Below the pieces are notes generated by a model. It was not told where the DNA came from and did no database searches. It worked only from the letters and a program-made list of their open reading frames with translations. DNA of 55,649 bases from contig BFEA01000019.1 of the NCBI GenBank assembly GCA_003427395.1, positions 4,604,208 to 4,659,856 of the forward strand. Direction: 5' to 3'. This DNA comes from Chara braunii. Taxonomy: Eukaryota > Plantae > Charophyceae. The translations under genes were made by a program, and so were the position numbers. Shown here piece by piece: positions 1,866 to 53,480 of this stretch. Numbering within the stretch: the stretch's first letter is position 1; each line of letters starts with the position of its first letter.

Positions 1866-4800
1866 TCATTTTTTTTTAAATAACGATAACACCCCTTGCC
1901 CCACCAATTCCCCCAAATCCCCACAGTCCCAAACCGCCTTATAAATTTGCATTAGGTCGCCACTCAGGAGGGGCCATATGACCTTCCAAAACTCCTTGTG
2001 GAAGCCATCTAAGCTTGGGGTTTTCTCTTCCTCCATTTGCGTGAGTGCCATCTAGATTTCCTCTTTGGTGACCTGGCGGTTTGAGCGGTCTTTCTGTGTC
2101 GAGGAGAGACGGCTTTCCATTGGGTGCACCAACTCTCTTAGTCGATCGTCCACTTGCCGTTGGGGGGTGTGGGAGGAAAAAAAGTCTTTGTAAAAGGATA
2201 TAGCAATCCTTACACAATGAGTTGTGGTAGTGGCCAATTTGTCGATCACGGGGCCTAGGAAGGCCTCGATAGTAGTACTGTGGGCTCTTAGTGAAGTCAG
2301 ACAGAAGAAATGAGAGTCCATGATGCCTTCGGTAACCCATTTTGCTAATTTGCCTTGAATCCTAATGCCTTGTCATCTGTGTTGTGCGAGTTGTAGGAAT
2401 TGGTCCTTCGATCTTTGAATATTATCCGGGATGTGATCGCTAGAGTTGTCTTGGTTAACCAGGTTGTGAAGTCGTCTATGAATGTCTATTTCATGCGCAT
2501 GACGTCTGTCTGCCAGCAGTTTCGAATAGTCCTTATATTTTTTGGCTAGGAAGAATATTCCTTTAGTGCACCATCGCACCTCGGAGTCAAAAGTGTGTCT
2601 TTCGTTCCGCCAAAATTCCCATACATCGTGAATGTATGTGTGGAAAGTTTTGTCCTTGAGTAAGGATGTATTGAACTTGTAATATCCAGACCCCTGATCT
2701 GACCGCTTGCGAAAGGAGAAGATAGTTTCACGTCAGCAATGGTCCATGCCGGAGTGGGGCCTCTGTGGAAAGGTAGTAGAAAGTTGTAGAGCATTTTGAA
2801 TCTCCTGAGAAAGTAGGATCAAATTTATACACGATTTCGAGTGTCTTGCCTGGTCATTGGTGTGAAGACATGTATAGGTGTTCTCTGTCGGATGGAGGTA
2901 TCTATACACATCTACCACGCCCAGGGCTCCACAAAGGTTAGCCATTGCTCTTTCGTCCTCTTCCACATAACTTGGACAAGGGTTCCGGGGCCCCAACCTG
3001 TCCATCCATTTGTCGACGTAGCTTTGAAGTCACCGACGATAACCAGTGGGACTCCTTGTGGTGCGAGATTCTGAAGGTGGGTGAAAAAGTGTGCCCTTTC
3101 CGTTGCTGTGTTAGGGGCATATATGCAAAAAAATACAGATTAACTCCAGCTCCAACATCCCAAGGATCGACACCCACCTCCCCTGTTCTTCATCCGCCAC
3201 CCAATTTACCATCTCTAACCAAGACCCCTGTGAGACCCAAATTGCCACCCCTGCCGACCCTGTTGTCACCGCGTGCACCTTGTAGACCTGGTGTGGCCAA
3301 CCTGTTTTATGGGCCCGGTGGTGTTCAGGTTTATCCATGAGGTGGGTTTCCTGAACGCAGATGACATCAGGCCACGTCCATTCCTCCCACTCCCCTCGGC
3401 TGATCCCAAATAGCCTGTCTTTTCGAGGAGTTGAAGGAGGTCAATCCATTTCCATTAAGAGTCCTTAGATCTAGGACTGCATTTCGGAGACAACTCTTCC
3501 ACTACGGGTTCTTGCAATACAATGTGTCAATATCATCCATCGATTTAACCTTTTCCAATCGCACCCTGATTCTAGTCTCTTATGCATGGCCAGGCGGACC
3601 AGTCGATCGTGCACAGCAGCCCGTTCCAGAGAACCCTCAATAAGCAAGTGTGTAGGTCCTCCTCCGACCCGAAGGAGTTGGCTTTTACCTGATGGAGGTG
3701 GAGCTCCATCAGGGCTCCATGATTAAACCACTTCAAGTTGGAGTCTTTGTCATCCTCAAACTGGACATACAGATCTGTGGTAGCTACCCTTATTGAGCCC
3801 TCGAATTGGGGGAGAGTTGCGAGGATTCTGGCTGGGTAGTGGTGACAAAGAAAGTGTCCCTCAGGCCAGGTAGGGACCAGATGTTGTAGAAGCCCCAACC
3901 TGGCAGCGTAACCCCCCCCTTGAACTGGGGAGAGTCCGATCTCCATCCTGTCTCCCGCTTGCGTCAGTGGGATAACTGCCACCCCCTCTTTCTGCAATAG
4001 GGTTTTTTTGTATGGGTCCACTTCCACCATTTGCCTGAGTTTTTTATGGCACGGTTGACCGGGGTTGGGATCGACCTGCACCATCATTTGGTTCACCCCT
4101 GGTCCTTCCGGGGATGGCTGTTGTTGCGCTTGGGGGTGGAACTGCAGGGCTGTGAGATGGCGGATCTGTTGGAAAATCTCCGGCTAGGTTATATGCGGGG
4201 GGGGGCGCCTTTTAGGGCCTTTCGAAGGGTCGGGCTCTTGTCTAACATGGCAAACAATTGAGCATAGGTACAGTCCCAAAAGTCCTGGGAGACACCCGGA
4301 TGTTGGGCTTGAAAGCCGTCTACCAGCCAATCAGCAATTATTTCGAGTTTCTGTTAAGTGTCCATGTCGGCTGGAGGTGCTCCCGTATCCTCTTGATGGT
4401 CAATGCCCATCGTTGCCACATGGGGGAGGAGGGGGGCTGAGGGTTCCTCAATCTCCATAGGTTGCAGGCTGAAAGCCCCCTCGAGGTGGTCCACCGTATC
4501 GACTTTTCTCTGGGCCTTGTGCTTTTTTCCCTCTGAGATGGGTACCTGTTGTTCCTTGTTCCCCCTAGTTTCCTTCCCTTTCCTTTCCCGATTCTCAGCG
4601 TTGTCTTTCCCCCCGGGCAGCTCCGCAGACGTGGCGGGCTGATTCTGCTGGCCGTCCTCGCTCGGTTGTTCGCTGGTGGGCTTAGCGGCCAGGTGGTTCC
4701 CTGTTGCCTGTTCCCCCCTTGCCGGTACCTGGAAGTGTGCCGCAGAAGTTTTGAATAATCATTGCAGTAGCTCCCCCAATTGTATGCGGTTTGGCAGACG

Positions 4801-5990
4801 TTGTTCATTTTTTTTTCTTCTTCTTAAACAACCCGAACGGTTGTTGGGGGTGCTGATAGGAGCAGACACCACCAGCACCTTCAGGGAGTCTCCATCTATT
4901 GGTGGGGAGCAGCACCTGCTGGAAATCGGGCCCAGCGTCCCTGTAATGTAAAATGTGATGAATGACCTTGTTCTGGAATGTCCTTCACCTGCAAACTGTT
5001 CTCCAGGCCTCCCCTTACCTGTGTATGCGCCTGGGTCCAAATTCCGTTGGGGCCTCTGCATGCAAAGTTTGCAGGCCTGACATGATCCAATCCGAAATTT
5101 GCAGTATTGAGGCATTTGGGCTCTATAAAAGCTCGAGGCTCGTTGGATTGCCCCTCCCTTTTACACACAACTCTAGTACGCCCCCATAGGGATCCCTCAG
5201 ACCAGTGGTTGACTGCTGGTGTTTGGAGGATTGTACATGGGTTCCTTTTCCGTTTTGTTCCCCCCGCGGGGCCTGCTGTCCCTCATGGTCCCGACCCCCC
5301 ACCATCGCCACCCCTCCTCCATCAGATCCCCCTGATTCAATGTCAATCAGGGCGAACCTGTTCCTTCCTGCACCCTGCTCCTTTCTCCCTTCTTTGGTCC
5401 AGGTCTGTGAGCCTCCCTGTTGGCCTTTTGGCGGAGTTTTTGGGCTCATCTGGCTCCCCTGATCCATCAGGCAGTCTTCTGGGGCCGGGCCTAATTTCCT
5501 CCTCTCCGGTTTGCCCTGTTCCATCCTCCCGCCCATCGTGGACCGTACGGGGGCGGGTTCGTGTGGTTGTAAATGGGATTCCACCGTCTTTGGGGGCATC
5601 CAAGTGGGTGGAGGTTTGGTGTCCAAGTTGGGATCCCCCGCCCTATCCCACACCCAGCCAATGGTTTCCCTTCTCTCGTCTGCCTTCTCAGCATAGACCC
5701 ACCCTTCATGCCCTGGCTCTACTGTACGCCAACGTGTGCTCCTAAAGGGATTTTGAATTAGACGCCCTGTTGCCCTGACTTGGTTGACGGGGTGGTGGGG
5801 GCAAGCCGAGACGGTATATAGGTGTCCATAGGCTTGACACTTGAAACACCATGGACATAGCTTGTGAGCCATGTGTATCTTGAAGTCTTTTTTCCCAACC
5901 CGGAAGGCGATTATATCATCAATGGAGAACGGCCATCCTTCAGGGAGGTCTATCGCCAACATACCAGAAACATAGTTTGGATACATTCAT
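1866..5990 (-). mobile_element. Degenerate L1/Tx1 LINE: ORF1, APE endonuclease and start of RT region; 3' part lost
   Basis: ORF1 knuckle WCFKCQAYGH (5123-5986 ORF); ORF1 C-terminal domain 3572-4096; APE start LDLRTLNGNGL near 3480, ICVQETH-like motif, GVPLVIVGDFKA, GMDH; pre-RT KTPSLDGFHKEFW...GQGVLSL at 1866-2051; many stops and frameshifts. Confidence 0.9.
4808..4943 (-). ncRNA. LINE 3'-terminal structured RNA module (type A), copy 1, with poly(A), inserted in ORF1 of another LINE
   Basis: Reverse complement reads agggacgctgggcccgatttccagcaggtgctgctccccaccaatagatggag, then a hairpin with loop tgctcctatca and an A-rich tail (T-run from 4808). Confidence 0.75.
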
Positions 5991-6659: not shown

Positions 6660-6808
6660 CACATACTAAATTTGTTACTAGTTGTGGCACATACTAAATT
6701 TGTTACTAGTTGTGGCGATAAGAGCATCCCCCCCCTAACAGATCAGTTAGTGACTCCATTCTATTGGTGGGGAGTGGCACCTGCTGGAAACCGGGTCCAG
6801 CGTCCCTG
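6660..6808 (-). ncRNA. Type A 3' module, copy 2, ending in a 28-bp tandem duplication
   Basis: Core at 6753-6807; loop atgctcttatc; cacatactaaatttgttactagttgtgg repeated at 6660-6687 and 6688-6715. Confidence 0.75.
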
Positions 6809-7053
6809 AGCATACAATAATGTCATACAGATCGAGAGTGGAAAGCTTCCAAACCAAGCTGTACTAGCCCCCATGAAAGAACATAGTGAAATGGACATTG
6901 GAACCGTCTTAGGGTCTGCAGCCCTGAGGGGCCCAGGCTGCACTAGCGGTAGCGACCCGACGCTAGCGGATTGGTGAGACCCGGTTCCCCCGGCTCGACT
7001 GGCGACTGGGGAGGGAAGCTCCTTGGACGCTGGGCCTGTGCGTGCGCCCAGCA

Positions 7054-8690: not shown

Positions 8691-9394
8691 GCTAAGGGGT
8701 TTTCCATTCAGGGGATATGTAGAGATCGATGAATGATTACAGACAGATTGGATGTTGTCTCACATGGATTTTGCACACATATAGACAGTCTCTGACTGTA
8801 GGACATAACTACACCACTGTATAGGGACGCTGGACCCGATTTCCAGTGCACATAATTACACATAGTTACACACCACTGAATAGGGACGCTGGACCCGATC
8901 ACCAGTGGACACACATCACATCATCGTATTACACGTCACATCATGGTTAGGGTTCCGTTTGATTGATAAGACATACATAGGGCGTTGGTGATATCAACAC
9001 ATCTCTGCATAGGGGGCTGGACTTGATTTCCAGCAGATATATTCACATCATTGTACAGGACGCAGGACCCGATTTCCAGAAGATACATTCACATCATCGT
9101 ACAGGGACGCTGGACCCGATTTCCAGCAGGTGTAGCTCCCCACCAATAGATGGAGCCTTTGAAGTCGGGACCTACTTACCGAGGATGCTCTTATCACCTC
9201 GCTAAGTAGGTTCCCATATACGAAGTTTCAAAAAACAAAACAAACTGGACCCGGTGTCCAGCAGGTGACGCTCCCCACCAATAGATTGGAGCCATCTATA
9301 AACTGGGGCTTGCTATTGGAGGATGCTCGTATCACCTCCAATAGCATGTTGCCACAAATGTTTCAAAAAAAAAGAAGAAAAAAAAAAAGGGAAA
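8691..9394 (+). mobile_element. Non-coding SINE-like composite retroposon: tandem hairpin-1 units plus two type A modules, each with an A-tail
   Basis: Partial units at ~8822, 8881, 9009, 9057; full module 9103-9244; second module 9245-9388; candidate TSD actatggtgctgt (8678-8690) / actagggtgctgt (9395-9407). Confidence 0.6.
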
Positions 9395-9919
9395 ACTAGG
9401 GTGCTGTCACGGTTTGAGTTTGACAATGCGTTTCAGTCACGATTTCACGAATGTTGTGCCAAACCGAGGAAAATCGTGAATGTGTACAGCCCAGCTTGAG
9501 GGTCGGGTGGGATGTTGTATTCGAGGGATGCCTGAAGTGGATTAAGAACTGAAATCGTGACTGCGCCTTAGTTACCCCGAAATTGTAAGACTCCAGACGA
9601 TGTGCATAACCTGAGTCCCCCTTGTAACATGAACTGCCAGCGATGGGTGACAGAACTGGGGATACAGTTGTCTGGTCCTCTCGAATAAGATCAGTAGTGA
9701 GGAGAAGTCTGGAATACTCTATATGAAGAATCAGGCAAAGAGGTTATCCTTCCGTTTGGGGAAGCAATCAATGCCTCTTGTGTTCCCTTGATAGATACTG
9801 TAATACTCCATGAAGAAGAGGGTCAACATGTCAATCCTTCCTTTGGGGGAAGTAACCAATGCCTCTTGCCGTTCTTTTTTTTTGGGGGGGGGGGCAACGG
9901 CTCCTGGGTCACACCCAGC

Positions 9920-9920
<1 letters not shown>

Positions 9921-9951
<31 letters not shown>

Positions 9952-12900
9952 GCCTGTGCAAAACCTCTATCCCAGTCGTGGTAAGAGAACCACTGGGATT
10001 GAGGCTTTGTCTGGTGGGCCGCTCCATCTATTGGTGGGGAGCCTCACTTGCTGGAAACCGGGTCCAGCGTCCCTTAGATACATCTTAAAGTAGTTTCTCT
10101 TTTTCGCCATTGAGCCTGACACCACAGTGCTGGAAACCGGGTCCAGCGTCCCATGTCCGGATTATAACATCCCTTCCTAACCTGAGGTGTGGTCGGGTGG
10201 AGGGGGGGGGCCACCGGGGGGCACCGGTGGAGACTCCCTCCGAAACCCAGCCCCTACCCACCATCTACTGTCCTCGCGGTGCAGGTAAAATGAGAAGGTA
10301 AAATGAGAAGTAAAAAGAACCGGAAAGGACTAAGAAATCTTGCAGGAATATGAATATGAATAGTCTGGAGAGGCTGAAATAAGACTGACATCGACTGCAG
10401 TAAGACTGGAGGAAGGCTGAACAATACTGAACAAAAAAACTGAAACTGAAACTGAACAAACTCATAAGACTGAAGGAAGACTGAACAAGACTGATCAAGC
10501 TCATGACTCAGGTGGCACTTCCTCCAAGGACAAGGGGTGGGGGGTCTGCAAAATCCTGGGCGGGCTGTAACGGGTCTCCCTGATCTACCTTAGTCCATTC
10601 GTGAAAAAACAACCGATAATCTCTTTCAATCTCTACTGGGTGTTCCTCTTGCAGATCTCTCTCCAATTGCTGATCCCCGGCCCACTTTACCTCCGCCACC
10701 CATCCCCCCCTTTCCCCTCCCAACCAGTCCTTGCCAAAGCGGGAGATGATTCGGTTAATATCTCCCCGGGTATGCATTTGATCGAGTTTGTCTTTTGCCG
10801 CCCTCCACTGGGCCGTGAGTTCGTGCTGTACTAATAGCCGTAAGTGTTCCGTGGCCTCTCCATCCTCCACCTTTGCTCCTTCCACCTCTAGGGTGCATCT
10901 CCTCCACCATATGACCCATAGGACAGCGCGTCTTCCTAGGTGAAACATATTCTCCTCAAATGTGTTCCCTTGGATCTGGGGGTAGTACCCCAAGAGTATG
11001 CCCTTCCAGTCCCATGGCCACAACGCTGCCAGAACAATGTGCCGCCAAATCCTATCCCAGCTTCTCCACCATAAACCGCCGCCGGGCACAGGAGGAAGAT
11101 GTGTTCTATTGTCTCAGCACGCTTCTGCCCGGGGAAGCACTGGAGACATCTGTGGCACCACGGTAATGCTCGTCCCTGCTGTTCTAGGCGTGTCTGCTCT
11201 ATTAGCCAATCGTTGATGGGCAGGCATCGATGTTCTATTTGCCACTGCAAGGCAGAGATTTTTGTCGGTCTCTTTCCATAGTGAGCGAACCATCTAATGG
11301 GTTTGAGCAACCTTCACTCTATATTGAGGTGGCGTTACCATCTGTCTTCTATTAACTCTCGCAGTCTACGTTTGGGCCGGAGCATTCGGTAAGCCGATTT
11401 AGATTTTAGATTGACTAGTGTTAATGTCTTTGCCTTCCCCCTATGGATCCTAGCTTCCTGAGACCATCTCCATTCCTCGGGGTCGAAAGGGAGATCTTCG
11501 ATGGGGGTTGTTGGTCGGTATGCCCTCCATCCTCTTCCATCATCAAGTACTCCAATGCCATATACATCCTTTTTCTCTGTCCATATAAAGCGTTGTTGAT
11601 TCCACTGTAATCTGTCATCCTTCTGGATAGAGAAGATTTCGATCAGCACTTGTGTTGGATGGATGAGGTGCACGCGCCCCACTTGCTTATCATGCTTGGG
11701 CAGCCCTACCCAGTCCCCTTCTTTTAGGCAAGGGCCTTTTTGGAGGGTGATGTACCAATGAAGGGGGAAGCTTTCGATGAGTTCTTCCAGGGCTGGTTCT
11801 GTGAAGTGATAGTACCACAGCCATGTGCACATTCTTCTTGTGTTTTTCCAGCACCTTGCCTCCGTGTCCAAAAGGTCCCCTACCCTCCGGACCCCGTGTT
11901 TCACCCAAGCCTTCCATGGGGAGTCCGAGTTACACCTCACGTGGCGCAGTGAGTCCGTGATCAGTCGATTTCCAAACAAGGGTTGTCTGAAGATTTCCTC
12001 CCACCTGTCTGGTGTCTGTCGGTCTGGGGGGGGGGAGCTTCCTCGTATGCAGGAGGCGCAACCATTGTTTATCTGTAGGATCCCCATTCCGATATTTCCT
12101 AAGTAGCTTTCAATATCTCTCTTCGAGCCATACCAGGGGTCAGTTTGAGGCGGAACTTCTGGGGTCAGGGCTGCAATTTGCGCTAGGGCTAAAGGAACCC
12201 ATGGAGAGGTTGATGAGAAGATAATATGTTGGAGCCAGCGAACCGTGAGGGCCTGGAACTGTGTGGTCGGGTCCACAATCCCCAACCCTCGTCTGGCCTT
12301 AGGCTGAATCACCGATTTCCATGCTACTCGGCTGATGGCGTGGGGGTTGTTACTGTCCCCTCTCCATAGGAAGGCCGCCAACTGCTGCTTCAGTGTTTTG
12401 AGCCCTCCATTGCTCATGGGCCATAGAATAGCCTTATACCAAAGTGTACCGAGTACTACATTGTTAATTACCAGAGTCCGCCCAAAAATGGAGGTGTGTT
12501 TGTTGTTCCAACTTTGTAGCTTGGCCTGTGTCGGTCGTGTCAGTCATTCATCATTGGTCATTGGTTCACCCGTAGCCGTAACTAGAGCCCCAAGAATCCT
12601 AAGAGGCTCTTCTGGGGTGAGTCAGGTGACTCGCGGGTTTTCGGTGGCCTTCCCCCTTGGTGGTGTAACCACCATCCTACGGTCTTTTGTCCCCAGTTCA
12701 CGGTCATGTTTGACATTTTCCAGAAACGGCTCATAAGATTCTGGATTTCTTCCATATTGGAGTCCGTTGCCTCCACCATTATAGTGAGGTCGTCTGCAAA
12801 AAGAGAACAGATAGGTATTGTCTCCTCTGGGATATCGGTAATCCTGATCCGTGTAAGATCTTTATTGTGTCTCAGGTTGGCCGACAGTGCCTCCATTATG

Positions 12901-13480
12901 ACCAAGAAGAGATAGGGGGCAATGGGGTCCCCTTGTCTCACTGACCGCTGGAGTTCAAATGGGGGTGCCACCAAACCACTGACTTGCACGCAGGTGGTGG
13001 CATTTTCGTGGAGAATTCTCACCCAACGGCGAAAAGCGGAACCAAAGTTCATTTTTTCTAAATATTTGTCAAGAAAGTTCCAATTGATGTGGTCATAGGC
13101 CTTCTCGAAGTCAATAAATATAATCGCTGCATTTGACCGATTTCTTTGTGCCAGTTGGACCACATCGTTAATCAGCAAGATATTTTCTTGTATATTCTTG
13201 CTGGCCATGAACCCTGTTTGGGCCGGATGTATGATATCTTCCAAGACAGCCGCCGTGCGATTTGCTAGCGCTTTCGAAAGCATTTTGTAAACTACTGTCA
13301 AGAGCGTGATGGGTTTATCATTTCTGATGTTCATTTTGTCCTTTTTTTTTATAGTAGTGTCAGTATGCCCTTTCCCACTGTTTCCCCCATTTCCCCGGCT
13401 TCCCATACCTCCTGGTAATAGTCCCATAAATCCCCCAGCGTTTGTATAGGCAACTTTAGCAGTTTTGAAACAGGGCAAAA
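9921..13480 (-). mobile_element. 5'-truncated L1/Tx1 LINE: RT, C-terminal region, 3'UTR with type A module, poly(A)
   Basis: RT motifs KPITLL, IDFEKAYD, SVRQGDPIAPYLF, SLFADD (12582-13478); zf-RVT LQWQIEHRCLP...CxxC...ETIEHIFLLCP; module 10021-10074; T-run 9921-9948. Confidence 0.95.
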
Positions 13481-13886
13481 AAAAACACCTCTAAATCTGC
13501 ATTCGTGCCACTTCAAGAAAATGGTCACAGTTTCAACCCCCCGCTGGCGCCACTTTGTCTTTTCTTGCCTATTTCAAACTTAAACGGTGACTCAGGAGCA
13601 GTTTCCCTTTTTTTTTTTTTTTTAAGCTTAGGGTGTTATAAGGGCCAAGTACCAAACCCGCGGTGATTATTTATTTTTATTTTTTTTAAACAAAAGGGGC
13701 CCAATGCCCAAGGCTGATATTAATTTTGAGAATATTGAGGCCGGGTCCACACAGTCTACCCGGAGAAGTCCACTAGAGCCTGTATCATGCCTCTTCACCC
13801 TTAATAGGGCGCCAAAAAGTCGTCTCATCCTAGCACATATATCCTCAGATACCTACACGTCTCATTCATATCCATACCATGATCTG

Positions 13887-14632
13887 CAGCGTTGTCATGC
13901 GGGGATCCCTGGGGCCCAAGCCGGGGCAGGGGTTTCACCCCCGGACCCCCGCCCCGGGGCNNNNNNNNNNNNNNNNNNNNNNNNNNNNNNNNNNNNNNNN
14001 NNNNNNNNNNNNNNNNNNNNNNNNNNNNNNNNNNNNNNNNNNNNNNNNNNNNNNNNNNNNNNNNNNNNNNNNNNNNNNNNNNNNNNNNNNNNNNNNNNNN
14101 NNNNNNNNNNNNNNNNNNNNNNNNNNNNNNNNNNNNNNNNNNNNNNNNNNNNNNNNNNNNNNNNNNNNNNNNNNNNNNNNNNNNNNNNNNNNNNNNNNNN
14201 NNNNNNNNNNNNNNNNNNNNNNNNNNNNNNNNNNNNNNNNNNNNNNNNNNNNNNNNNNNNNNNNNNNNNNNNNNNNNNNNNNNNNNNNNNNNNNNNNNNN
14301 NNNNNNNNNNNNNNNNNNNNNNNNNNNNNNNNNNNNNNNNNNNNNNNNNNNNNNNNNNNNNNNNNNNNNNNNNNNNNNNNNNNNNNNNNNNNNNNNNNNN
14401 NNNNNNNNNNNNNNNNNNNNNNNNNNNNNNNNNNNNNNNNNNNNNNNNNNNNNNNNNNNNNNNNNNNNNNNNNNNNNNNNNNNNNNNNNNNNNNNNNNNN
14501 NNNNNNNNNNNNNNNNNNNNNNNNNNNNNNNNNNNNNNNNNNNNNNNNNNNNNNNNNNNNNNNNNGCCAGGGTTGCGGGTGCCCACCCCCGAACCCCCAC
14601 CGGGGCCCCGGGGTCGGGGCTCGACAACCCTG
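13887..14632 (+). mobile_element. hAT DNA transposon copy (interior is an assembly gap)
   Basis: Ends CAGCGTTGTCATG / CTCGACAACCCTG; perfect 8-bp TSD ATGATCTG at 13879-13886 and 14633-14640; GC-rich subterminal CGGGG repeats. Confidence 0.9.
13961..14565. other. Assembly gap (N)
   Basis: N-run. Confidence 1.
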
Positions 14633-17600
14633 ATGATCTGGGAACCATACAAAGATTCGACAAGGGAAAAGGATCCGGGAATTCTGCTAGAGGTCGTGGT
14701 GGGATTGTTGAGTCGACTTCAATCTAGTTGCTAAAAGATAGGCGATGGTCCCCTTGAAATTCCTCCTCGTCCCTTACTTGTCCTCCTTCCCACTTCACCT
14801 ACCCCATTCTCCCTCCCTGATCCCCTCCAGCGAGCTATGATTAAACAACTGGATGTGATGCCAAATCTTCTTCTTGGATGTGATATATTGTATTTTTTCT
14901 TTGACTTTCTCCCATAGAGATAAAATATCAGTTTGAATTGGTTGTTTAATGGTTTCTGTGAACTTCGGCCCATCCACTTGTGCACCTTCCATCTCGTGAG
15001 TATATCGTCTTATCCATATTCCCCGCAATATTGCCCTTCTACCAATAATGAATAAATTTCTTGTGAATTCATCTATATGTTCTGGGTTCCATGACTCAAG
15101 GAGTAACGCTTTTCACTTTCATGGCCAGGTATGAGAACCCAATTGTCGCCAAAACCATACTGCTCCTGGGCATTGGAGGAAGATATGTTCAATGGTTTAT
15201 GGAATGAACCTCTTTTAAGCAAGGAAGTGTTCAGTTTGTGGAACCCAGGCCCTTGATCTGGCCTTTTCCTCATCGTTAGTACTATGCCACATGTCTTGTG
15301 GTCAAGCCCCGGGTGCGGGCTACAAAGGAGTATTAGCGACCATTGTATAGCGCCCTCGAGATCATTAGATAGCAGGATAAGGTCTATTCTAGATTTAGAG
15401 AGGCGTGTCAAGTCGCTATCGCGGATGCATGTGAATGCTCTTGATTAAGGGTGCAGGCGTTGGAATGTATCAAAGACAGAAAGAGCCTCGCAGAGATCTG
15501 CTAACATCTGCTCATCTTCTAATGCCGCGAAAGAGGGGGATTCCTGGGGATTCCATCTATCATGACTTTTATCGGGTGTTGCATTAAAATCTCTGGCGAT
15601 TATTAAGGGTATACCTTCCGGGACTTGCTTTCCCGTCGTCCCCAAGAATTCTCGTCTATCGCTTACTGAGTTTAGTGAATAGATGCAGAGGACACATAGC
15701 AATTTTAATTCCAACATTCCCAAGACAAAAGCTCATCACCCTTCCACTTCGTCCACAGCCCAGTGAATCGGTTGAAATCTAGAATCCGGGGGTATCCAGA
15801 TTGCAACTCCAGTTGAGCCTGGTTTAGGAGCGTGAGCTCTGATGGCAGTTTGAGGCCAGATCAGCTTATGGGCCCTATTATGCTCTGGGGTGTTTTGTAG
15901 GTGAGTTTTCTGTATACAAATTACATCCGGCCACTGCCTACCTCCTATCCCCCTGAGTTGATCCCAAATGGCTTGGTGTTTCTCTGGTTTACTTGATGCC
16001 AGGCCATTAACGTTGATGGAGCGTAGGTTGAGGTCGGCAGCCTCCACGCATTTCTTCCATGCCGGGTTCCTGTAGTATAGTGTATCTAGATCCTCCATTA
16101 CTTTAAGGTTCGTTTCCCGGTTTCACAGTGGAACCCCGGTTTCATAGTGGATGTCATTGTCTGACGTCCCATGTGTCTGAATGTAAAACTTTTTTTCGCA
16201 CAATGTGACATAGGCATTTACATATATCGTCCTCGGGCCAATACTCACTAGCTTTTATCTTAGCGCAGTGTAGACCCAAGAGAGCGTTGTGGCTGTACTA
16301 GCCCAGGTTGGCGGATTTGTTGGATTCGAAAAGTAGGTAGAGGTAATTCCTAGCCATCTGCTCGTTGCACGCCCCAAACCTCGCCCCAAACCTCATGCCT
16401 GCTCTGGCCCCCGGAGTGTAGTGTTTGGGGATGAAGTCGGACATTTGGTTGGTAAAGGCTATATCCCATTACCTCCGATCTCCTCTGTGAGGCGCAAAGT
16501 CCCAGCCGTGTAACGTCACTCCCCTATATACCCCCACCGGGGAGAGGCCTAACTCCCATTTTCCATCCACCTTTCTGAGGGGGACTACCAAGACTCCGCT
16601 TAGTTTAGATAGAGGTAGCTCAAAGAGGCCCCGTTCTATGAGCTGCCTCAACTTAAGTCTGCGTGAAGTCATTCCTTCCTCGGTTGCTTCCCCTCCCTTG
16701 GCCTCCGGGACGTGCACCTTCTGCGCTGGATGATGAGCTACCGGAGGATGAAACCTGCTCTGGGCCACGGCCAGTACCCGCTGGAAGGCCTCTACCCATG
16801 TGAAGTGGGGGGGAGGGCCGGATGTTAATGCGGTCGTCAACGATGGACTGTTGTTCAGGAGCCCTACCAGATCGACATAAGTGTTGTCCCAATATTCTTC
16901 CCCCTCATATGGCCAGTCTGACTGGAGGTGCTTAAGTATCCAGTCGGCCACCACTTGGATTTTCTGATCTAGATCCATCTCTTGTGGGGGGACGTCCGGG
17001 TCAGCTGGATCTTGGCTGGAATCTTCCATTTCCAAATCCGGGGGCGGGAAGGATGTATCCACTTCCATCTGTTGTGCCCCAAAGGCGTCAGAGCAGAAGT
17101 CAGGGGGGAGTGGTCTCACTTCCTCTTGTTCGGATTGTTGCTGTTGCTGTTTTTGTTCTGGCTGACCAGCTTTGGGTTGGGACCGTTGTTATTCTTGTTC
17201 CAGCTGATTGGACCCTTGCTTACCACAGTCATAAATCCAGTTCTCTAATTTTGAAACAAAAGCTCCTAATTCTCATATTTCATATTCTCATCATATAAAT
17301 TCTTAATGTATTTTCTACAAAGTAATCCCTTCAAGAAATTTTCGTTACCTTTATATTAAATAATTACACAACCTCGATTTCTAGTTTGTCATCATAGTTA
17401 AAATTGCAATTCTCTAATTTCCTAAATGGTAACCCTTAAAAATTACAATTCCGGATTTTTTCTGATTAATATTCTGAATTCATAATCGGAAATTCATTTT
17501 GGACATCTTAATTAGAAATTTCAAAAACATTCCAATGTGTTTTTTTTTTAAAAATGTTGTGATTCCTAAGTCCTAAATCTCGTCAATTCTCTAGGGTTGT

Positions 17601-19019: not shown

Positions 19020-19970
19020 ACAAAATGCGTTGGCATGTGAGAAAATTGGAAGTGCCATCTCGGTACTCTGTCCCATTGTCTTTCTGTTGAGAACCAGGGT
19101 CGCCACTGAACGTTGTTACAATCGTCCAGGAAGCACAACCTCCTGTTTTTGTCTGTCCAAGTGACTGAAGAAGATTTGGGTGATGAGAAAACACCGGGGC
19201 TGGATTCCTTCACCAAGGAATTCTGTGCGGTTTTGGGACCTATTGGGTGAAGACCTTATGGAATACATACGGGCGGTGTAGAAGGAGGGATCCTTGGGAG
19301 TCATGATGGGACAAGGAGTAACTACCTTTCTGTACAAAAAAGGGGATAAGGAAGACATACGAAACTATAGGCCCATCACTCTCCTTCCTGTCCCTCTTCA
19401 ACATAATATTGGCCGAGGCCGATCTATGAAAGATTTGTACCCAATGGCTGAACACTGGCCTAAAGTTCATTTTAGTAATGCACATATCAAGGAAATCCCA
19501 GTCAACATAATCATAGGCCTTAACGTTTTCAAAGTCGATCAAAAGGACAGCAACTTGGAGTTTATGTTGTCTGAGATATTTGATGGTCTCGTTGACCAAC
19601 AAGACATTATCCTGGATTCATGCCCAATTGCAATATCCAGGATAATGTCTTGTTGGTCAACGAGACCATCAAATATGCCAGACAACATAAACTCCAAGCT
19701 GCTGTACTTTTCATCGACTTTGAAGGCCTATGATCATGTTGACTGGGATTTCCTTGATATATGCATTACTAAAATGAACTTTGGGTCAGTGTTCAGCCAT
19801 GGGTACAAAGATCTTTCATAGATCGGCCTCGACAAATATTATGTTGAACGGCCACCTGGCTGCCCCGTTCCCCCTTAAGACGTCGGTGCGACAAGGGGAT
19901 CACATAGGACCCCTCCTCTTCATTATTATCATGAAGACTCTCGCATCACTCATTAGAACGCACTCACAGA
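19020..19970 (+). mobile_element. LINE RT fragment, 5' part, containing a fold-back inversion; continues at 30454
   Basis: GQGVTTFLYKKGDKEDIRNYRPITLL; KAYDHVDWDFLD; SVRQGDHIGPLLFII. Confidence 0.9.
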
Positions 19971-27419: not shown

Positions 27420-27992
27420 TGTTGACCTATCCCCCCCCCTCCCCTCCACCATTACACGTTCACCCCTTCGCCCCCAAGCCCCCACTGCATTGTCGTTCAT
27501 GGCGGTGCACCCGTCTTCAACAAAGAAAAAAAAAAAAAAAAAACGTACAACAGGCCTTCGTTACCGCATTTCAATTTTCAACAACCTACCCCCTTCCTCA
27601 CCCTACCCTCCCTGAACCATAGACCCCTTTCCCCCCAACCTCCATTGCATTGTCGCTTATGGCTGTTCACCCGTCTAGAAGAAAAAATAAAATAAAATAA
27701 AATAAAATCAGACCCTACGACAGACCTTTGTTACCGCATTTCAATTTTAAACAACCATCCGTCCCCCCCCCACACGTTGACCCCTTTCCCCCAAACCCCT
27801 ACTACATTGCCGCTCATGGCGGTTCACCCTTCTTAAAGAAAGATTTAAGTAAAAAAAAGAAAAACAGACCCTACGACGGACCTTTGTTACCGCATTTCAA
27901 TTTTCAACAACCATCCGCCCCCCCCCCCCACACGTTGACACCCCCCTTCCCCCAAACCCCCCCCCAATTCCCCCCCCTCGCGGGTCCCCCCC

Positions 27993-28024
<32 letters not shown>

Positions 28025-28660
28025 TGCCCCCACCCTCGGCTTCCTTTCCCCCTTTTCCATAACCCCCCCCCCCCCCCCCCCCCGCCTCTCGTTGACCCCT
28101 TTACCCCCTAACCCCCACTGCATTGCCGCTCATGGCGGTTCACCATTCTTAAAGAAAGAAAAAAAAATAAAAAGAACAGACCCTACGACGGGCCTTTGTT
28201 ACCGCATTTCAATTTTCAACAACCATCCGCCCCCCCCCGCCACACGTTGACCCCTTTCCCCCAAACCCCCCTTCCCTTCCCACTCATGGCGGGTCCCCCT
28301 TCTTGAAGGGGAAAAAAAAAAAAAAAAAAAACCCGTATGACGGCCCTTTATTACTGCATGTCAATTTTCAACAACCATTTCCCCCCCCCCAACACGTTGA
28401 CCCCTTTCCCCCAAACCCCCATTGCATTGCCGCTCACCCTGCGACGGACCTTTGTTACCACATTTCAATTTTCAACAACCATCCGCCCCCCCCGCCACAC
28501 GTTGACCACTTTCCCCCCAACCCCCACTGCATTGCCGCTCATGGCGGTTCACCATTCTTAAGGAAAGAAAAAAAGAAAAAAAAACAGACCCTACAACGGA
28601 TCTTTGTTACCGCATTTCAATTTTCTACAACCATCCCCCCCCACACCGTGCCCCTTTATA
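27420..28660. repeat. Tandem array of ~150-165 bp units upstream of the transposase
   Basis: gaccctacgacggacctttgttaccgcatttcaattttcaacaacc...gccgctcatggcggttcacc...A-run repeated about 8 times. Confidence 0.9.
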
Positions 28661-31026: not shown

Positions 31027-34000
31027 TTTTTTTTCTTCTTCTAAGAACACCCTCTGCCACAGATAGGAGTGATGATATAGGCATGCACTCCTATCTACCC
31101 TTAAGGGTGGCTCCAGTCTTTTGGTGGGGAGCATCACCTGCTGGAAAGCGGGTCCAGCGTCTCCATTGAATAAAAAAGAGTCATTATACATAAAGCATGA
31201 ATGGGGGCAGTGACGCCTCTTCAATCGTTACTAGACCGCGAGATCAGTTTAAGACAACAAGCTACCCTGCCCTTCAGAAAAAGTGTAAGCAATTAACAAT
31301 CACTCCTCTTCTCCACCAAACCATTGCAAATCAACCATAAAAAGTTGTGAAGGAGGAAAGGGATCTGCAAAACAATTTGGAGACCTAAGGGAATATCCTG
31401 GCTGCAGCGCGAACTAGTCGCAAAAGCTGAGATGGAAGATCGTCTTGAGAGATTCCTCCATCTCTTCCCCACTTGGCCACTCCACCTTTCCCAGACCCTT
31501 CCCTTGAGTTCCCCCCAAGCAGTTCAAGACAAAATTTTGAATTGTTTCTTGTATATCCTTCTTTTGATGCAATTTCAGAAGTCTGGTCTTAGTTTTTTCC
31601 CATTGTGCTCTGATCTCAGTCTGAATAAATTGAACAATTATCTCAGAGATTTTCTCCCCTTCCAAGGCTACGTTATCTCTTGCTAGGACACAATGTTTGT
31701 ACCAAAGGGCCCATAATACCGCCTTTCTGCCTATAGTAAACAAATTACGCTGAAACTTAGAAAGTCCGAAGTCTATAGGTTCCCAATAGCCCAGCAAGAT
31801 AGCGCACCATTCCCACGACCAATCTATCACAGGCAGACTCCTCTAAGTGTTATCCCACCGTCGCCATAATAGGGCCACATTCGGACACTTCATAAAAATG
31901 TGTTCAATAGTTTCACAAATTTTTCTACTAGGGAAAGTCGTATGACAAGACTTACACCATGGGGAAGCTAAACCCCATTGTTATAGACTTGAATGATCAA
32001 TGAGTCAGTCATTTGTCGGCAAACACCGGTGAATAATCTACCATTGAAGGGAAACAAATTTAGCGCGTCTTTGTTTTAAGCTGTTAAATAATTTCATATT
32101 TTTAACAATATTACTGTCAGTATTCAAGTGTCTAGACCACCGTTCTTGCACAATCGCAGCTACATTCACCCTTGGTCTGAGAAGACGATATGCCGCCTTA
32201 ACCATCATGGATTGTAGAGTTCTTGATTTTTCAGTTTTACTAGTCTTCCAGACCCACTCATCCGAGGTCTAGGGGCAGATCTGGAATATGATATGAGGAT
32301 GGTACGCTCTCTAGTTTTTCGTTGAAGAGTAGTACAACACACGAATCCTGTAAAGGTCCCGAAATGAGAAAAAATTTACCTGATTATTTTGGGATGGGTG
32401 TAAGAAAAGTTTTTTAGTCACCTAACAAATACTCACAAGAAAATCTTTAGTCATCTTACAAATACTCACAATAGCCCCTTTTGGGTGAATGTGAACGATC
32501 TGACCCACCTCCCACTGTTCTGAATCAGTTCCTACTACTCAATCTCCCTCTTTGAAGAAGATGTCTTTCCTTAGCGTTCTAACCCAAGCTAAGGGAATGA
32601 AGAAGATGATCTGCTCTAAATTGTAGGAAAGTTGGTGGACTTACCTGAACCTACCTCTTAATTGCTCTGTTGTTAATCAGTTCCTGTTTTAAGTGTCCCA
32701 TATATTTTTGATCCTTAACACTCCTCTTTTAACCCACATGGACCATGGAGGATCGAAACTTTTGAAAACTACATCATTCTGATTAGAGATTCATCTGTTG
32801 TCAAAGAGGGGTTGCCTGAGGACCTCCTCATAATGTGAGGGGAAAGGTCTATTGGTTAGAGGTAAATTGCGCCATGTTTTCAATAAAGATACCCTTAAGT
32901 TATCCAACAATAAATATATTATAGTTGCTTCCCTCAAACCCTCTTCTCTAGACTGTGCCTTTGCCCTTGGAATGCTCCAAAATAAATCTTCAACCAATGT
33001 AAGAGGGTGAATATCCTCTGTGGTTTGTGGCACCAATCTACGAATTTGTTACATAGTCATAGGTTGCCAGGGCTTATCATTAGATAAAATCAGTTCCTTT
33101 AACCATTGGAGTGCTAGCGACTGACATTGCAGGGACAGATCAAGAAGTCATAATCCGCCTCTGAGGTTGGGCTGGATAAGGGAAAGTCATGCCTCTCTAG
33201 GGATAACATTTTCTAACTCATGGTTGCATCTCCATAAAAATGTTGCCACTTGTTTTTGTAGTCTCTTTATGCTTGACTTAGTGATCGCCCATAAGGCGGA
33301 TTTGTACCATATGGATGCTAAGACTATATTGTTAATAATCAATGCTCCTTCAATCGAAGAAGTTTGTTGATTTTTTCATTGATTCATTTTTTTAATCGCT
33401 AGACGAGAAATTCAATCGTCATTCGATATCGGTTTGCCTTATGCCATAACAGAGACCCCCAACAACCTCAAAAAAGCTTCTAATGGAAGTCACTTCACTC
33501 TCGGATATTTTAGGGGACGCACTCCATTTTAATGAATCCACCACCCATGTGTCTTATTTCCTCAATTGATCATCATATCCGACGAAACCGAGAAACGGTC
33601 CGTTAATGCCTTAATCTCTTCCATATTGGAGGTCGAGGTCTCCATGAGTGTAGTAAGATCATCCGCAAACATAGAAGCAATTGGGATTGCATCGTCAGGA
33701 ATCCCTGAGCTCTGAAGTCATTTAAGATTATGATTTGCCCTAAGATTTGCTCCAAATGCTTCCATGATTATTACAAACAAAAATGGGGTTAACGGATCCC
33801 CTTGCCTTACCAATCGTTCAAGGCGAAACGGTGGTGAGAGAAAACCATTTATATGAATCCTCGTAGAAGCATTTGTATGCAAAATCCTCATCCATTTACG
33901 CAAATTTGTTCCAAAATTCATTTTATTAAGACATGCATCCAAAAATCTCCAGTGTACATGATCATTAGGTCTTTTCAAAGTCTATGAACACTATTGTCGC

Positions 34001-35899: not shown

Positions 35900-38800
35900 G
35901 TGTATAGCGATGAACTAAATCAATCAGAACAGCCAATAGGATGGTTTTGGGAGGGGAGGAGTGATGCGAGAAAACCCCCTCGGCCGCCTGCAGATTGGAC
36001 TCCTTCTCTGATTCCTCCACCTCATCACCACCAACAACAGCGAAGAGGAGGAGGTGGGGGCAGAGAGGGATATCAACAACTACACTATTCTCAGGATTGT
36101 TCTTCTTCACAACAGAAAAAGGTACAGGAGAAGTCTCCGATGCATTTGAAGCAAAAAAAAGGAGCAAGAACTGCCAATTAAGACTCACACTGAACAGGAA
36201 ACTGATTTGAATAAGAATCAAGCTGATAACAACTCACAACAACTCTCAGAATAGAGAAGTGAAGGTTCAAGGTCCATCGGCGCTAATCCTATCAGTTATC
36301 TGCCGAGAATAAATCGGTACCAAGAATCAGAATGGAGGGTAGTTACGAAGAAAGGACAAAATAAGATAAAAGAAAACACAGAGCCTCATTCTTCGTTGCA
36401 TGACAAAATGAAAAATGAGCATTCAGAGCAACCAATGTTACCTGCAGAAGAAACACTATTATCTGCAGAGGAAAACGTTTCCCAGCCTGTGGACGTTGAC
36501 CCTCTAAAAATGGCAATGACTGCTGATCCCATGGAAGTAGAGAATACTCATACTAAAATTCCTGAACTATCTCCTACAATCAATAGTAGCAAGGAAAGGG
36601 GGGGAACCTGCACTCATAACTTACCAAATTGGGAGAATGGATGATAATGAATCTGCAAAAAAAGTTCCCAGATGGGAGTAATGAAGATTGGCTGCAAATT
36701 CAAAACCATCTGATGCTTGTGATCGTAAACAGTGAAAGTCGGCTCTGCAGTACGGTCTTCCCCAAGGTTTGAATTAGACCAGCACGTGCCATAGGCTACT
36801 CACTGTAGTAACAAAAAAAAAATTTCCCCAACTTATGAATAATGGCATACCGCAGATTTCGTCAACACATGAGACACGATAAACATATATTTTGGTAAGC
36901 CAGAACAAACCAAAACTGAGTAGCCTGAGAAAACTCAAGGCTCTAGCAAGGAAACATACGATAGTAAAGACAAAAAAAAAAGTGGGAGGAAAGTTGATTT
37001 TCGATAAACATCAGAAAGCATATCACTCAGTCTCACGTCTGTTACTTCGTAACAGACTCCCATACCTAGCCCTTACCCCTTGCAAAGCCAAATCCAAATT
37101 CAAACTGTATAACCAGACCAAGGGCAGGATGAAACTCTCAAAACATAAAGGAAAAAAAAACAAAAAAAAAAAAACAAATCAGGAAACTGCTAAATCAAGG
37201 CAGCCCCCAGACATTATTCTCCGGAAATTGGAACAGCAGATATGTGCCAATGACGGAAAGGTCATTCAGAAATCACAAACTGTTGAGGTACATTTCGGGT
37301 CAATAACAGAGGAAAGTACACTGACTCAAAATGATCCTACAACACTCCAAAGAGGTCGAACAACAAACAGACTCACACATGATGCACAGTCACGCACGGT
37401 CGAGTCAGTGATACTGCAAGAAAACAACTGAACAATTACTGCAGTTCCACTGAACGCTGTGGCAGTGAAATCGCAGGAGGATGTACTGTTTCTGAGCTCC
37501 TCAGGAGTTGTCTTGCAATCTGCTGAAAACAACCTGGTTCTAGCAGCATCAGACACACTGCTTTTCCAACATACAACAGATGAGTTAAAGCCAAAAATTG
37601 AAATTAGTGAAGGGATTACACTGGAAGAGGGGCAGGGGAGTATCACACAAAAAAAAAGAAAGGGGAGTAGAATACAGTCCCGAGAAAGAGAAAATGAGAT
37701 CTCACTCCTCGAAGAAGACAGCCCCCCCAAGCTACCCCCTTGTGTATTGAATACACAAGGAGTAAAAGAAATAGTATCGGAAATAACAGGAGAAAGGAAG
37801 TTTTTGCTCCTGTCAGGACAATCCACAAAAATACCACTTCAGTTTCCAGACAAGGAAGTGACTCAACAGAAGGAGGAACAAAAGAGGGAGGAGGAAAGTA
37901 AAAGACCCAAGGAAATAGAGGAACAAGATCTAAGATTAATGGTAGCAACCCCAAACAACAAAAGACTGAAACTCAAACAATGGATGGCTCAAGGAGAAGG
38001 GGATCTCCCTCCATTGAAAACAGGAGTGGTCTTTTTGCCTGTCAGGAGCAAAGGGGGATATTGGCAAGTTGGTCTGTCAGAACCACAAGGAGTTGCACAC
38101 GGAGAAGTAACGGTGCAAGGAACCAAGCCTCAATTTTTGTCTCTGGTAGCTCTTACAGGGGGAATGGCAGGAGAATCCTGGATTAAACTGGAACTATTAA
38201 AATTCATTAAAAAAAAATTCCCACCAGGGGCTATGGCTATCCTTTCATTAACAACTGAAGAACAGAGGGTGGCAGAGAGAGACGTGTACCTCAAGTATGA
38301 AGGGGCAAAACAAAATGAATTGAAATGGTTTGAACAGGAAACTTTAAAAGACATTCAAATCCTCAAAATCAAGGAAGGCCTGTTCTGGTCAGAAGAAGAC
38401 GTGGGGACCCTCCTAGCCAAAGTGCTAAAGCACGGCATTATGGAAAAGGGAGGGGTACTGGATATAAGTCAGTGGAAGAACCTCTAGACGAATTTTCTTA
38501 AGACCATTCTGAAAGCTTACTAAAAGTATTTATGAAAAGGAATTAAAATTATTGATGCCTTGTACAACAAAGATAAATAATGAAAATTGCTTAGGCGGCA
38601 AGTGGACTTAGACGTCAAAACTTTAAATGTGAATGGTCTAGCCTCTGCCAAATTAAGCAAAAGACAAACGATCTTTGAACAGTTAAAAGGTATTGATGGT
38701 AAATAATGATCAGACGTAATATGTATCCAGGAAACCCACTTGATGAATACAGAAATGCACAACTACCTACACAAACAGATACGGCCTTACCATTCCTATA

Positions 38801-41800: not shown

Positions 41801-43365
41801 CTAAAAAGAAGACTAAGATACTGTCACCATTCGAAGAAAGCCCTAGAAAGCATTATAGATCTTATTCCACTTGAATGAATTCGAATACTGAGAAAAGGTC
41901 CCAAACTAATGATAAAAGACTGGGTAGCACTCAAGTCACACTCTCAGCAGATTGGCAGAGTTAGTGAGCAAGCCCAAAATGGAAGCTTTCTCTTAAAAAT
42001 GTTTTCTCTTTCTTCTACCAATGTAGTTCTTCAGAAGGAGCAAGAGGAAACCAGATGGGTCCAGGATCAGAAGATTTACAGGATAAGGGTAATCAAAACT
42101 AAAGATTTTTTGGTAGCCTTTAAACCAAAGTGTCCTATCCCTGGCTTCCCTTTGACCCCGAAAATTGGGTATGGAGTACAAATACAAGGGTAGAAAGAAA
42201 TAATAGATCATTCAAGAGAAACATCCAATCGCTAAAAGTCAAATCTGCCTATCGAATACTACGACCAAAAACCAATCTGAAAGACAAAGTCCTTACTAGA
42301 TGGATGAAACACCTAAATATAAGCAAGGAAGAACTGAGGTCTGTTAGATGGTTTAAAACAGCCAAAAACAAACCTGCCAAAATAGCTTCCCTACAATGGC
42401 AAATTGAACATAGGTGTCTCCCAACCAATGATTGGCTCATTGATAGATCCTCTTTAGAACAGAAAGGACAAGCATCAAGATCGTGTAAGCTTTGTAAATC
42501 AGTCTTTCTGAGCAAAAAAATTCCAGAAACTATAGAGCATATCTTTATGCAATGTCCTGGTTCCATCTGGATATGGAGGTGGTGGGACCGTATATGGTCA
42601 CAGATAGTTCCACAAGCCCCCTGGCCATGGGGGTGGAAAGAGATCCTACTAGAAACATGATCCCCTGAGATAGAAGAAGTGAAAAATAATGAAGGATTTG
42701 TGGAAAATCTATTTCGTATGGGAAGAAAAGCGGTAATGTGGGCTATTTGGATGAGGAGGTGCACATATGAATGGGAAGGTGCTAGGTTAGATAGCCCGGA
42801 CTTTACAGAGACTATCAAACAACAAATTCAAACATACATCTTATCAAAATGGGATCAAATAAAGAAAAAAGTTCATTTTCTTTCAAACAAGTCAGAAATT
42901 CAAACTCATTTTTGAAAATTCAGTTGTAAATGGCTGGGCGGAAACCAGGGAAGACGAATTGGGAATGTCACATGGAATAGGGCAAGGGAGGATGATAATG
43001 CTGCATTCAACAGAGACTACAAAGTGATATTTGAAGATTGGACTACTGTTGATCCCTCAATACCCTTGCAACCACTAGCAGAATTCCCAGATCCTTTCCC
43101 CCCACCTGCATCAACCCTCGTTCCTATCTTTTGGTATGGATTATAGAGTAAGGCATGGCTAATTTTAATAGGTCATTTTGGCGTTCTAAAAGAAGGATGA
43201 AGAGGTGATGCTTTTCTCAAAGGAAAAGGACGCTGTGCCCGGTTCTCAGAAAATTTTCGTTGTGGCCACTCCGGGCAGAATGTGAGGACCCCGGCCTTAA
43301 TCTTCATATTGGTAATATCAGCCCTGGGCACTGGGCCCTTTTTTCAAAAAAAAAAAAAAAAAAAA
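35900..43365 (+). mobile_element. Near full-length decayed L1/Tx1 LINE: ORF1 3' part, APE, RT, zf-RVT, type B 3'UTR, poly(A)
   Basis: ORF1 C-terminus ends 38487; VKTLNVNGLA and CIQETH; IIGDFN; RT NYRPITLL, DFEKAY, QGDPL, LFADD (40123-41022); HRCLP/ETIEHIF; A-run 43346-43365. Confidence 0.95.
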
Positions 43366-43765
43366 GTCTGAACCCCTAAGCCCTCGAGATGCAGAACTCT
43401 GAACCCTGTGCTCCCACAGACTTCCTTGCGGAGAATCTGAGATGTTGCCCAACCCATCTATACACCATCAGCACGTACCATCCTTGCTCATATCCCTCCT
43501 CCCTTTTTAGTAGTCTGAACCCCTAAGCCCTCGAGACGCAGAACGTTGAACCGTGTGCGCCCACAGACTTCATTGTGTTGAATCTGAGACGTTGCGCATC
43601 CCTTCTATACACCTTCAGCACTTACCATCCCTGCTTATATCCCGCCTCCCTCTTTAGTAGTCTGAATCCCTATGCCCTCGAGAAGCAGAACTCTGAACCC
43701 TGTGCGCCCACATACCTCATTGTGGTGGATCTGAGATGTTGCCCATCCATTCTATACACTTTTTG
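43365..43765. repeat. ~147-bp tandem repeat, about 2.7 copies
   Basis: agtctgaacccctaagccctcgaga... at 43365, 43511 and 43659; partial inverted copy at 49623-49684. Confidence 0.9.
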
Positions 43766-45779: not shown

Positions 45780-46394
45780 GCTCAAGGGATGTCATTACCA
45801 GTAAGGAATCTGATACTCCCTCAACGACTATCTTCTCGAGAAGGACTGGCCTTCTTCCCATCACCAACACCTCAAGAAACCGGTAAAAGACAGAAATTGA
45901 GACAGATATTGGAGAAGGGGCAAGGGCAAAAATCTCAGGTTCCGAAAGGTAACTTGATTATTCTGGTGAGAAAAAAGGGGGGCTGGTGGGAGATAGGGCT
46001 CTCACCAGTGGGTCAGGATCAATATGGGGGTGTTACCTTGAGGGGTTGGTTTACATACATGGAGTATCACAGTGCTGGGGATAAGGTTTTCAAGAGGGAT
46101 TTGCATGATTTCCTAGCGAAACACTACGATCCTGGTCCACAAGCAACTCTTACCGAAATTGGAGAGAAAGCACATATGGTGAAGAGGGATACCTTTGTTC
46201 GTTTTGAAGAACACAAGGAGGCAGGCCTCAAGTGGTACTCTCATACAACCTTGCTCAGTTTACAGAATCTCAAGATCAAAGTCAATACAGTTTGGTCTGT
46301 GTCAGACGTGATGGCATTTTTGTGTTTCATTTTGCGTAGGGGTATCCTCAAGTCGAATTCTGACCTAGACAGTGGTAATTGGATCCGACTTTAG
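45780..46394 (+). pseudogene. Inverted segment encoding the LINE ORF1 C-terminal domain
   Basis: KRQKLRQ...WEIGLSP...LKWY...IKVNTVWS is homologous to 3572-4096, 16150-16670 and 37957-38487. Confidence 0.8.
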
Positions 46395-53289: not shown

Positions 53290-53480
53290 CACCATACCAC
53301 TTTATATCTACCATCGAGAGGGCGGGTGGGGGGAAGAGGTCAGGGAAGTCTGATAGTTGTCTCAGTGGGATGGTAGGGTCAATCTGTGTCCAGTCATGAA
53401 AGTGAAGGTGGTAATCCCAAATCATCTCCCCCTGTTCACATCTTAATCCTTCTCCTCGGACTGACCTCGTCATAGACTTC
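53290..53480 (-). mobile_element. LINE ORF2 extreme C-terminal fragment
   Basis: DYHLHFHDWTQIDPTIPLRQLSDFPDLFPPP matches the family C-terminal motif. Confidence 0.75.

Follow-up and report, generated by a model that had tools for sequence, protein, structure and literature searches.

The 55,649-nt stretch of DNA analysed here (the window) comes from the genome of Chara braunii, with which the protein relatives and the retrieved contigs agree. It is a nest of broken LINEs, in which ORF1 lies upstream of an ORF2 that carries an APE endonuclease, a reverse transcriptase (RT) and a C-terminal CCHC region. Pfam matches in the window ORFs are to RVT_1 and Exo_endo_phos, with zf-RVT found in related elements, and the pieces map in order. 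Among solved structures, the window RT is nearest to human L1 ORF2p, with an E value of 3e-26 as against 1e-16 for R2. By the domain order of ORF2, the affinity of the RT and the poly(A) end, the host elements are L1-clade LINEs, as had been claimed from the sequence. The coding region of LINE A is interrupted by a nested LINE end and by an assembly gap. The end of ORF1 holds a domain conserved in four divergent LINEs (37957-38487, 16181-16669, 3590-3923 and 45885-46394), for which Pfam gave no match. Two long inverted repeats also occur in the window, as do two tandem arrays, one of 157 nt with A-tails and the other of 147 nt, which follows element C (together at 27454-28657, 43365-43759, 19397-19848 and 53010-53148).

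The LINE ends share a short core, consisting of a 5' unit 1, a single A and a 3' unit 2 (Table 1). The original prediction had located nine cores, and all were recovered by nhmmer at the same coordinates and on the same strands (E 5e-21 to 8e-16). Seven of them are followed by an A-tail 62-75 nt past the core, those at 6753 and 50350 being tailless, and three lie in the 3' UTR of an ORF2, namely in elements A (ORF2 ending at 10508), B (ending at ~31.3 kb) and D (ending at 51866); both points had been predicted. Unit 1 also occurs on its own, in five additional window copies and one decayed copy. Insertion sites of the window copies are varied, and the short insertion at 4808-4968 has a likely 8-nt target duplication with one mismatch. 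Just upstream of the copy at 53682-53827 (+) is an inverted ORF2 end (53318-53416, -), an arrangement resembling L1 twin-priming inversions.

Table 1. Features of the focal copy and of the other LINE ends (window positions, unless a locus outside the window is named by its L number)
Feature	Position	Strand	Remarks
Focal core module	9103-9157	+	unit 1 + A + unit 2
Unit 1, focal copy	9104-9127	+	6-bp stem 9109-9114/9122-9127
Possible second stem in focal unit 1	GGG 9104-9106 with loop CCC 9115-9117	+	9118-9119 free; would give an H-type pseudoknot
Unit 2, focal copy, predicted H-type pseudoknot	9129-9156	+	stem 1 9129-9132/9141-9144
Unit 2, focal copy, stem 2 and loops	9135-9139/9152-9156	+	free loop 9133-9134; conserved loop 3 AAUAGAU 9145-9151
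Downstream long hairpin, focal copy	9167-9214	+	1-nt bulge, 7-nt CUCUUAU apical loop; z -4.65; stem family-specific
Decayed A-tail, focal copy	9230-9244	+	
Ladder of four additional unit 1 copies	8823-9082	+	at 8823, 8882, 9010, 9056
Second copy, begins within unit 1	9245-9389	+	own hairpin ~9304-9354, A-tail 9365-9389
LINE A 3' end	9921-10153	-	extra unit 1 10129-10153, core 10021-10074, hairpin, A-tail 9921-9948
LINE A coding region, broken	10508-17119	-	ORF1 piece, APE endonuclease, RT 12582-13478, C-terminal CCHC region
Short insertion in ORF1 of another LINE	4808-4968	-	~26 nt, core 4890-4942, hairpin, A-tail
Core copy, hairpin and tail lost	6753-6807	-	compensated pair in stem 2
LINE B 3' end	31027-31164	-	core 31109-31164, hairpin, A-tail; ORF2 pieces 31.3-35.8 kb
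Decayed core copy, no hairpin or tail	50350-50404	-	
LINE D 3' end	52519-52658	+	core 52519-52573, hairpin, A-tail; ORF2 end 50.8-51.9 kb
Core copy without GGG	53682-53827	+	hairpin and A-tail present
LINE C 3' end	43228-43366	+	decayed unit 1, then a different tail module replacing unit 2
Second conserved tail	43260-43366 (+); 13670-13770 (-); L004 34367; L011 16672		
CAAU-rich UTR hairpin module	52419-52448 (+); L003 8799; L004 11821		

When genomic contigs are aligned with the focal copy, 12,917 of them (which is not a copy number) cover 9102-9157, with a sharp drop on both sides, and this stack sets the borders of the 54-nt core. Eight LINE ends, when compared, agree at 89% of core positions. 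The surrounding UTRs had been described as largely unalignable, and the 55 nt upstream are indeed 48% identical, as against 44% in shuffled sequence. Outside the window, the sample comprised thirteen full copies from other Chara loci, plus three more at L012. Throughout, the core is found at the 3' end of the LINE, on the LINE's own strand and 6-90 nt ahead of the A-tail, which is the 3'-terminal, sense-strand position originally proposed. The core of L006 is that element's own tail, since a sister element has the UTR in common up to the start of the core, where a gap follows. The assembly contains mate-pair junction adapter at L006 ~6890-6925 (with a duplication) and at L012 ~11245-11285, both being assembly artefacts. 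A further UTR module, 70-100 nt upstream of the core, forms a hairpin with a CAAU-rich internal loop and a rewritten inner stem.

Unit 2 had been predicted to form two crossing stems, GGTG/CACC and GCTCC/GGAGC, and the loops between them are of 2, 1 and 7-8 nt. Within the window the sole compensated pair of the pseudoknot is the one already pointed out in the copy at 6753, and mismatches occur in stem 1 at 10021 and 53682 and in stem 2 at 4890 and 53682. The G-U wobbles that had been offered as further evidence are present, but they lend the pairing little weight, since any C-to-T change in a G-C pair yields one. The strong covariation stems from loci outside the window, where compensated versions of both stems are found. 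A search anchored on loop 3 alone gave 14 matches as against 0.5 expected and led to L009, a distant LINE in which one pair is swapped in each stem, loop 3 is unchanged and the A-tail follows directly. At L012, two pairs of stem 1 are swapped in one of the versions present. Stem 1 is thereby represented by GGUG/CACC, CAUG/CAUG and CUG/CAG, and stem 2 by GCUCC/GGAGC, GCCCC/GGGGC and ACUCC/GGAGU, while the loop AAUAGA, which is the most conserved stretch, stays the same in copies with altered stems. The comparative evidence thus gives good support to an H-type pseudoknot whose crossing stems are maintained by compensatory change, the independent events being few and affecting both stems. Among the variant positions listed, those that vary frequently in DNA contigs and RNA reads are 9118-9119 and 9133-9134, which are predicted loops. 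Nested folding programs cannot represent the knots, and a crude energy estimate, which does not separate the two folds, makes a nested alternative equally stable in the focal copy; of 20 copies, only 3 allow this alternative to continue across the free dinucleotide. The L009 LINE (13693-13751) ends ~0.9 kb upstream of an 18S rRNA gene, and it may target the rDNA spacer.

For unit 1, the 5' hairpin of the original prediction holds as regards its 6-bp stem, the inner pair of which covaries (A-U in 17 copies and G-C in 5, a result reached in 3 of 500 shuffles, with kinship ignored). The unit may instead be a second pseudoknot. The GGG before the stem and the loop CCC hardly vary, and their geometry is that of a second H-type knot; they are paired in 94% of cases, but never with changes on both sides, and a crude model credits the pairing with ~0 kcal/mol. 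From its invariance, such a second knot is plausible. At most LINE ends unit 1 stands alone in two to five copies upstream, with its pairing kept, and it also precedes the different tail of element C, from which we conclude that it is a module in its own right.

The downstream hairpin had been described as having stems that are rewritten yet still paired, and all six of the stems quoted are present. It folds in seven window copies, with z from -3.1 to -5.8, and does not fold in the two tailless ones. Its apex recurs, with one bulged base, 2-3 pairs and a 7-nt loop near CUCUUAY, above a stem that is rewritten. Four tails (L008, L009, L011 and L012) have no such hairpin, and in them the A-tail begins 6-18 nt after the core; one of these belongs to a relative of element B, which itself has the hairpin. 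The hairpin is a strong but dispensable part of the tail.

The core-bearing LINE families have RTs that are 52-67% identical, the RT of L006 being only ~20-30% identical. The RT tree was built from 12 elements without a Tx1 reference, broken ORF2 pieces being read with X at the breaks, and the short RT piece of L006 and the RT-less elements were placed by pairwise identity outside the tree. The canonical core is found on RT clades I and II, the clade-II element being ~20-30% identical, and immediately ahead of the core the clade-II elements have in common a long stretch of UTR that looks structured (L006 13000-13240 and L006 5400-5600, the latter on the minus strand). A second conserved tail, CCGGG ... 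GUGAGG ... CCCGG-CCUC, is possibly pseudoknotted and replaces unit 2 in RT clades I and III, being common to the clade-I element C and a clade-III element. Tail type is therefore discordant with the 12-element RT tree, in a sample that is small, and tail swaps are possible. A third recurring tail, CCUCUACAAC, stands ~12-20 nt before the A-run at window 54151 (+) and in six places in L003, L004, L008 and L011; in L003 it comes after a decayed core, further downstream. Short, non-coding carriers of the core also exist. Rfam and ARAGORN found no tRNA or 7SL head on them, and they may be truncated LINEs rather than non-autonomous SINEs.

As to the range of the core, protein searches found close relatives in Chara only, and the motif is absent from L005 and L007, the two LINE contigs sampled from outside the species. 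Exact-pattern scans gave no match in viral contigs (two patterns) or in bacterial and archaeal genomes. In metagenomes the same kind of scan matched two contigs only, both from the BFBZ01 set, which was presumably deposited with the Chara project. The Rfam scan foreseen in the original prediction gave no match for the core at the gathering score (window and four loci) or at E 10 (8780-10200), and the papers searched contain no pseudoknot in the tails of L1 or of Chara LINEs. The kind of element, a structured LINE 3' tail, is known; its pseudoknotted, modular and RT-clade-crossing form appears to be undescribed in Rfam and in the papers searched.

The core is also expressed. Two oligo-dT libraries (poly(A) RNA) contain ~300 and ~450 core reads per million, and ~80% of the core reads run in the sense direction, if the library is of the dUTP type, as is assumed. 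One transcript accounts for ~45% of core reads (window 9104-9156, RNA runs X5 and X7), and its source could be either an active element or a host gene whose mRNA uses the module. Read starts and ends do not pile up at the module, and most reads cross both borders; in fragmented oligo-dT libraries this is a weak test, and hence a weak argument against efficient cleavage or an exonuclease stop.

We read the module as an RNA element that acts in cis at the 3' end of the L1-type LINEs of Chara; it is conserved, sense-oriented and transcribed. By analogy with known LINE tails, its likeliest single function is as a template handle for ORF2p, in line with the stringent RT recognition of the original prediction, to which we would assign a probability of about 0.45. 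In such a mechanism, unit 2 would fold as a compact H-type pseudoknot with its A-rich loop packed on stem 1, and unit 1 would form either a hairpin or another knot. In the tails that have it, the long hairpin would loop out the spacer and so bring the knot near to the A-tail. ORF2p would then grip the surface of the knot and place the poly(A) end on the nicked target for target-primed reverse transcription, in the manner of the pseudoknot-hinge-stem of vertebrate R2. RNAs bearing the module would be copied preferentially, and this would account for the conservation of the core and for the very short copies that contain little else. Position, conservation and precedent favour such a handle. It is strained by the fact that tail type does not track the RT tree and by the lack of the hairpin in several tails, and a single RT grip leaves both the unit 1 ladders and an upstream UGUA unaccounted for. 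A simple handle is further weakened because stringent L2 proteins recognise family-specific loops (PMC4176376), yet the Chara core is nearly invariant.

Other functions can be proposed, and these and the handle are not mutually exclusive. The module could be a structured 3'-end-formation signal read by the host, with UGUA as a CFIm-type or far-upstream element, and AAUAGA in the knot loop as a near-upstream element; by folding away the spacer, the hairpin would give cleavage its normal distance. UGUA does occur no more than 16 nt upstream of the core in 13 of 19 copies, as against 1.8 in shuffles, and in all three L012 copies (16 of 22 in total), although the copies are related and the count is therefore not independent. 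That AAUAGA is kept while both stems change is in line with such a signal, but an A-rich loop 3 is expected in H-type knots from structure alone. From AAUAGA to the tail is 18-30 nt in the copies with no hairpin; where there is one, the distance is 74-101 nt raw and 16-40 nt folded, near the 13-30 nt window of plants (PMC1868727), although an RT handle would likewise give a fixed spacing. A host reader would account for a core common to several RT clades, but AAUAGA is missing from the alternative tail, and an AAUAAA-type element is not found in most streptophyte algae (PMC1868727). On balance we regard a host-read signal as unlikely, though as the chief rival of the handle, and it is likewise unlikely that a host-read, pseudoknot-embedded 3'-end signal is swapped as a cassette among unrelated LINE clades. 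If the host does read the module, it would be a structured poly(A) signal of a new kind, and host transcripts could end at its many copies in the genome; the papers searched describe no poly(A) signal, in retrotransposons or in plants, that depends on tertiary structure.

The remaining readings are less probable. Compact pseudoknots in viral RNAs block exonucleases or slow deadenylation, and similar protection in Chara would be an intrinsic property for which co-evolution with the RT is unnecessary; two window copies begin less than 30 nt from the 5' edge of the core. Rfam gave no xrRNA or ENE match, and the reads that pass both borders with no pile-up count weakly against protection, which we judge improbable. 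There is a similarly small chance that the units serve as a series of docking sites, for ORF1p or for a host protein aiding export, translation or RNP assembly, by analogy with the row of pseudoknots upstream of the tobamovirus 3' end: the multiple paired copies of unit 1, present even before the alternative tail, would suit such loading, but unit 2 is single and fixed in position. That the similarity is non-structural, due to a short repeat of recent spread or to a motif at the DNA level, with chance pairing, could be argued from the invariance of most positions, which are hence silent on pairing, and from the equal stability of the nested fold in the focal copy. This is very improbable given double compensations in both stems and in unrelated families, free positions that fall in loops, the limited extent of the alternative fold among copies, and a fixed place in LINE UTRs which sister elements share up to the core. 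LINEs often carry ribozymes, and the size of a double pseudoknot and the high conservation would be compatible with self-cleavage. However, Rfam has no ribozyme match, hammerhead included, even at E 10, the order of strands fits neither HDV-like, twister nor pistol folds by inspection, reads span both borders with no pile-up of ends, and the LINE ribozymes known to us are all at the 5' end, so that a self-cleaving ribozyme is very unlikely indeed.

Small H-type knots, such as luteoviral frameshift knots, the preQ1-I aptamer and the upstream knots of tobamoviruses, have stem and loop sizes of 4/2/5/1/7, an A-rich loop 3 and a tandem arrangement. Unit 2 matches these knots in size, and differs from them in lying in a retrotransposon 3' UTR rather than in a coding or leader context, with no Rfam match. 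An echo of tymovirus tRNA-like 3' structures had been suggested, and a hairpin followed by a pseudoknot is indeed common to both; the likeness goes no further, as the Chara module has no cloverleaf, no terminal CCA and no terminal knot (it lies 6-90 nt inside the end), and neither Rfam nor ARAGORN finds a tRNA-like match in it.

Closer parallels are found among LINE tails. The apex of the Chara hairpin, with its bulge, 2-3 bp, conserved loop and rewritten stem, resembles that of stringent L2 and maize L1 tails (PMC1636434, PMC3472496). The L2 tails UnaL2, ZfL2-1 and ZfL2-2 likewise have a bulged stem-loop near the 3' end, but they belong to the L2 clade, end in short repeats, are recognised by family-specific loops and have no pseudoknot (PMC1636434, PMC4176376). 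Stringent L1-clade tails are known in green plants from maize (LINE1-1_ZM/ZmSINE2-3) and Chlamydomonas (L1-1_CR/SINEX-3_CR) (PMC3472496). They share with Chara the L1 clade, the green lineage, a poly(A) end and ~45-80 conserved 3' nucleotides over divergent bodies, as well as a hairpin with a compensated stem and a conserved, UCU-containing loop (PMC3472496). They differ in being single hairpins, each in one lineage, with no pseudoknot reported (PMC3472496), whereas the Chara core crosses RT clades and can dispense with its hairpin. It has been proposed, as an open question, that ancestral L1 chose its template by 3' structure and that this requirement was afterwards loosened to poly(A) alone (PMC3472496), a proposal that rests on two examples. 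In Chara, which stands near the base of the land plants, the module is small and present in very many copies, compensatory variants occur naturally, and so do swaps of tails from one RT clade to another, so that the question becomes directly testable there.

The nearest architectural counterpart is vertebrate A-clade R2, in which a pseudoknot-hinge-stem in the 3' UTR is bound by the RT protein, pairing being required (PMC11601368). In both systems a pseudoknot, a short linker, a stem-loop and a short tail stand at the 3' end of a non-LTR element, and the stems diverge while the architecture is kept; R2 differs in its restriction-like endonuclease, its knot-contacting zinc fingers and the lack of a poly(A) tail (PMC11601368). 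Chara for its part has an APE-type L1 host, one or at most two knots, unit 1 in ladders and a hairpin that is optional, with no relation to R2 in sequence. If ORF2p reads the module, it would be the L1 counterpart of the R2 pseudoknot, and possibly a selective template tag for RT-based gene insertion.
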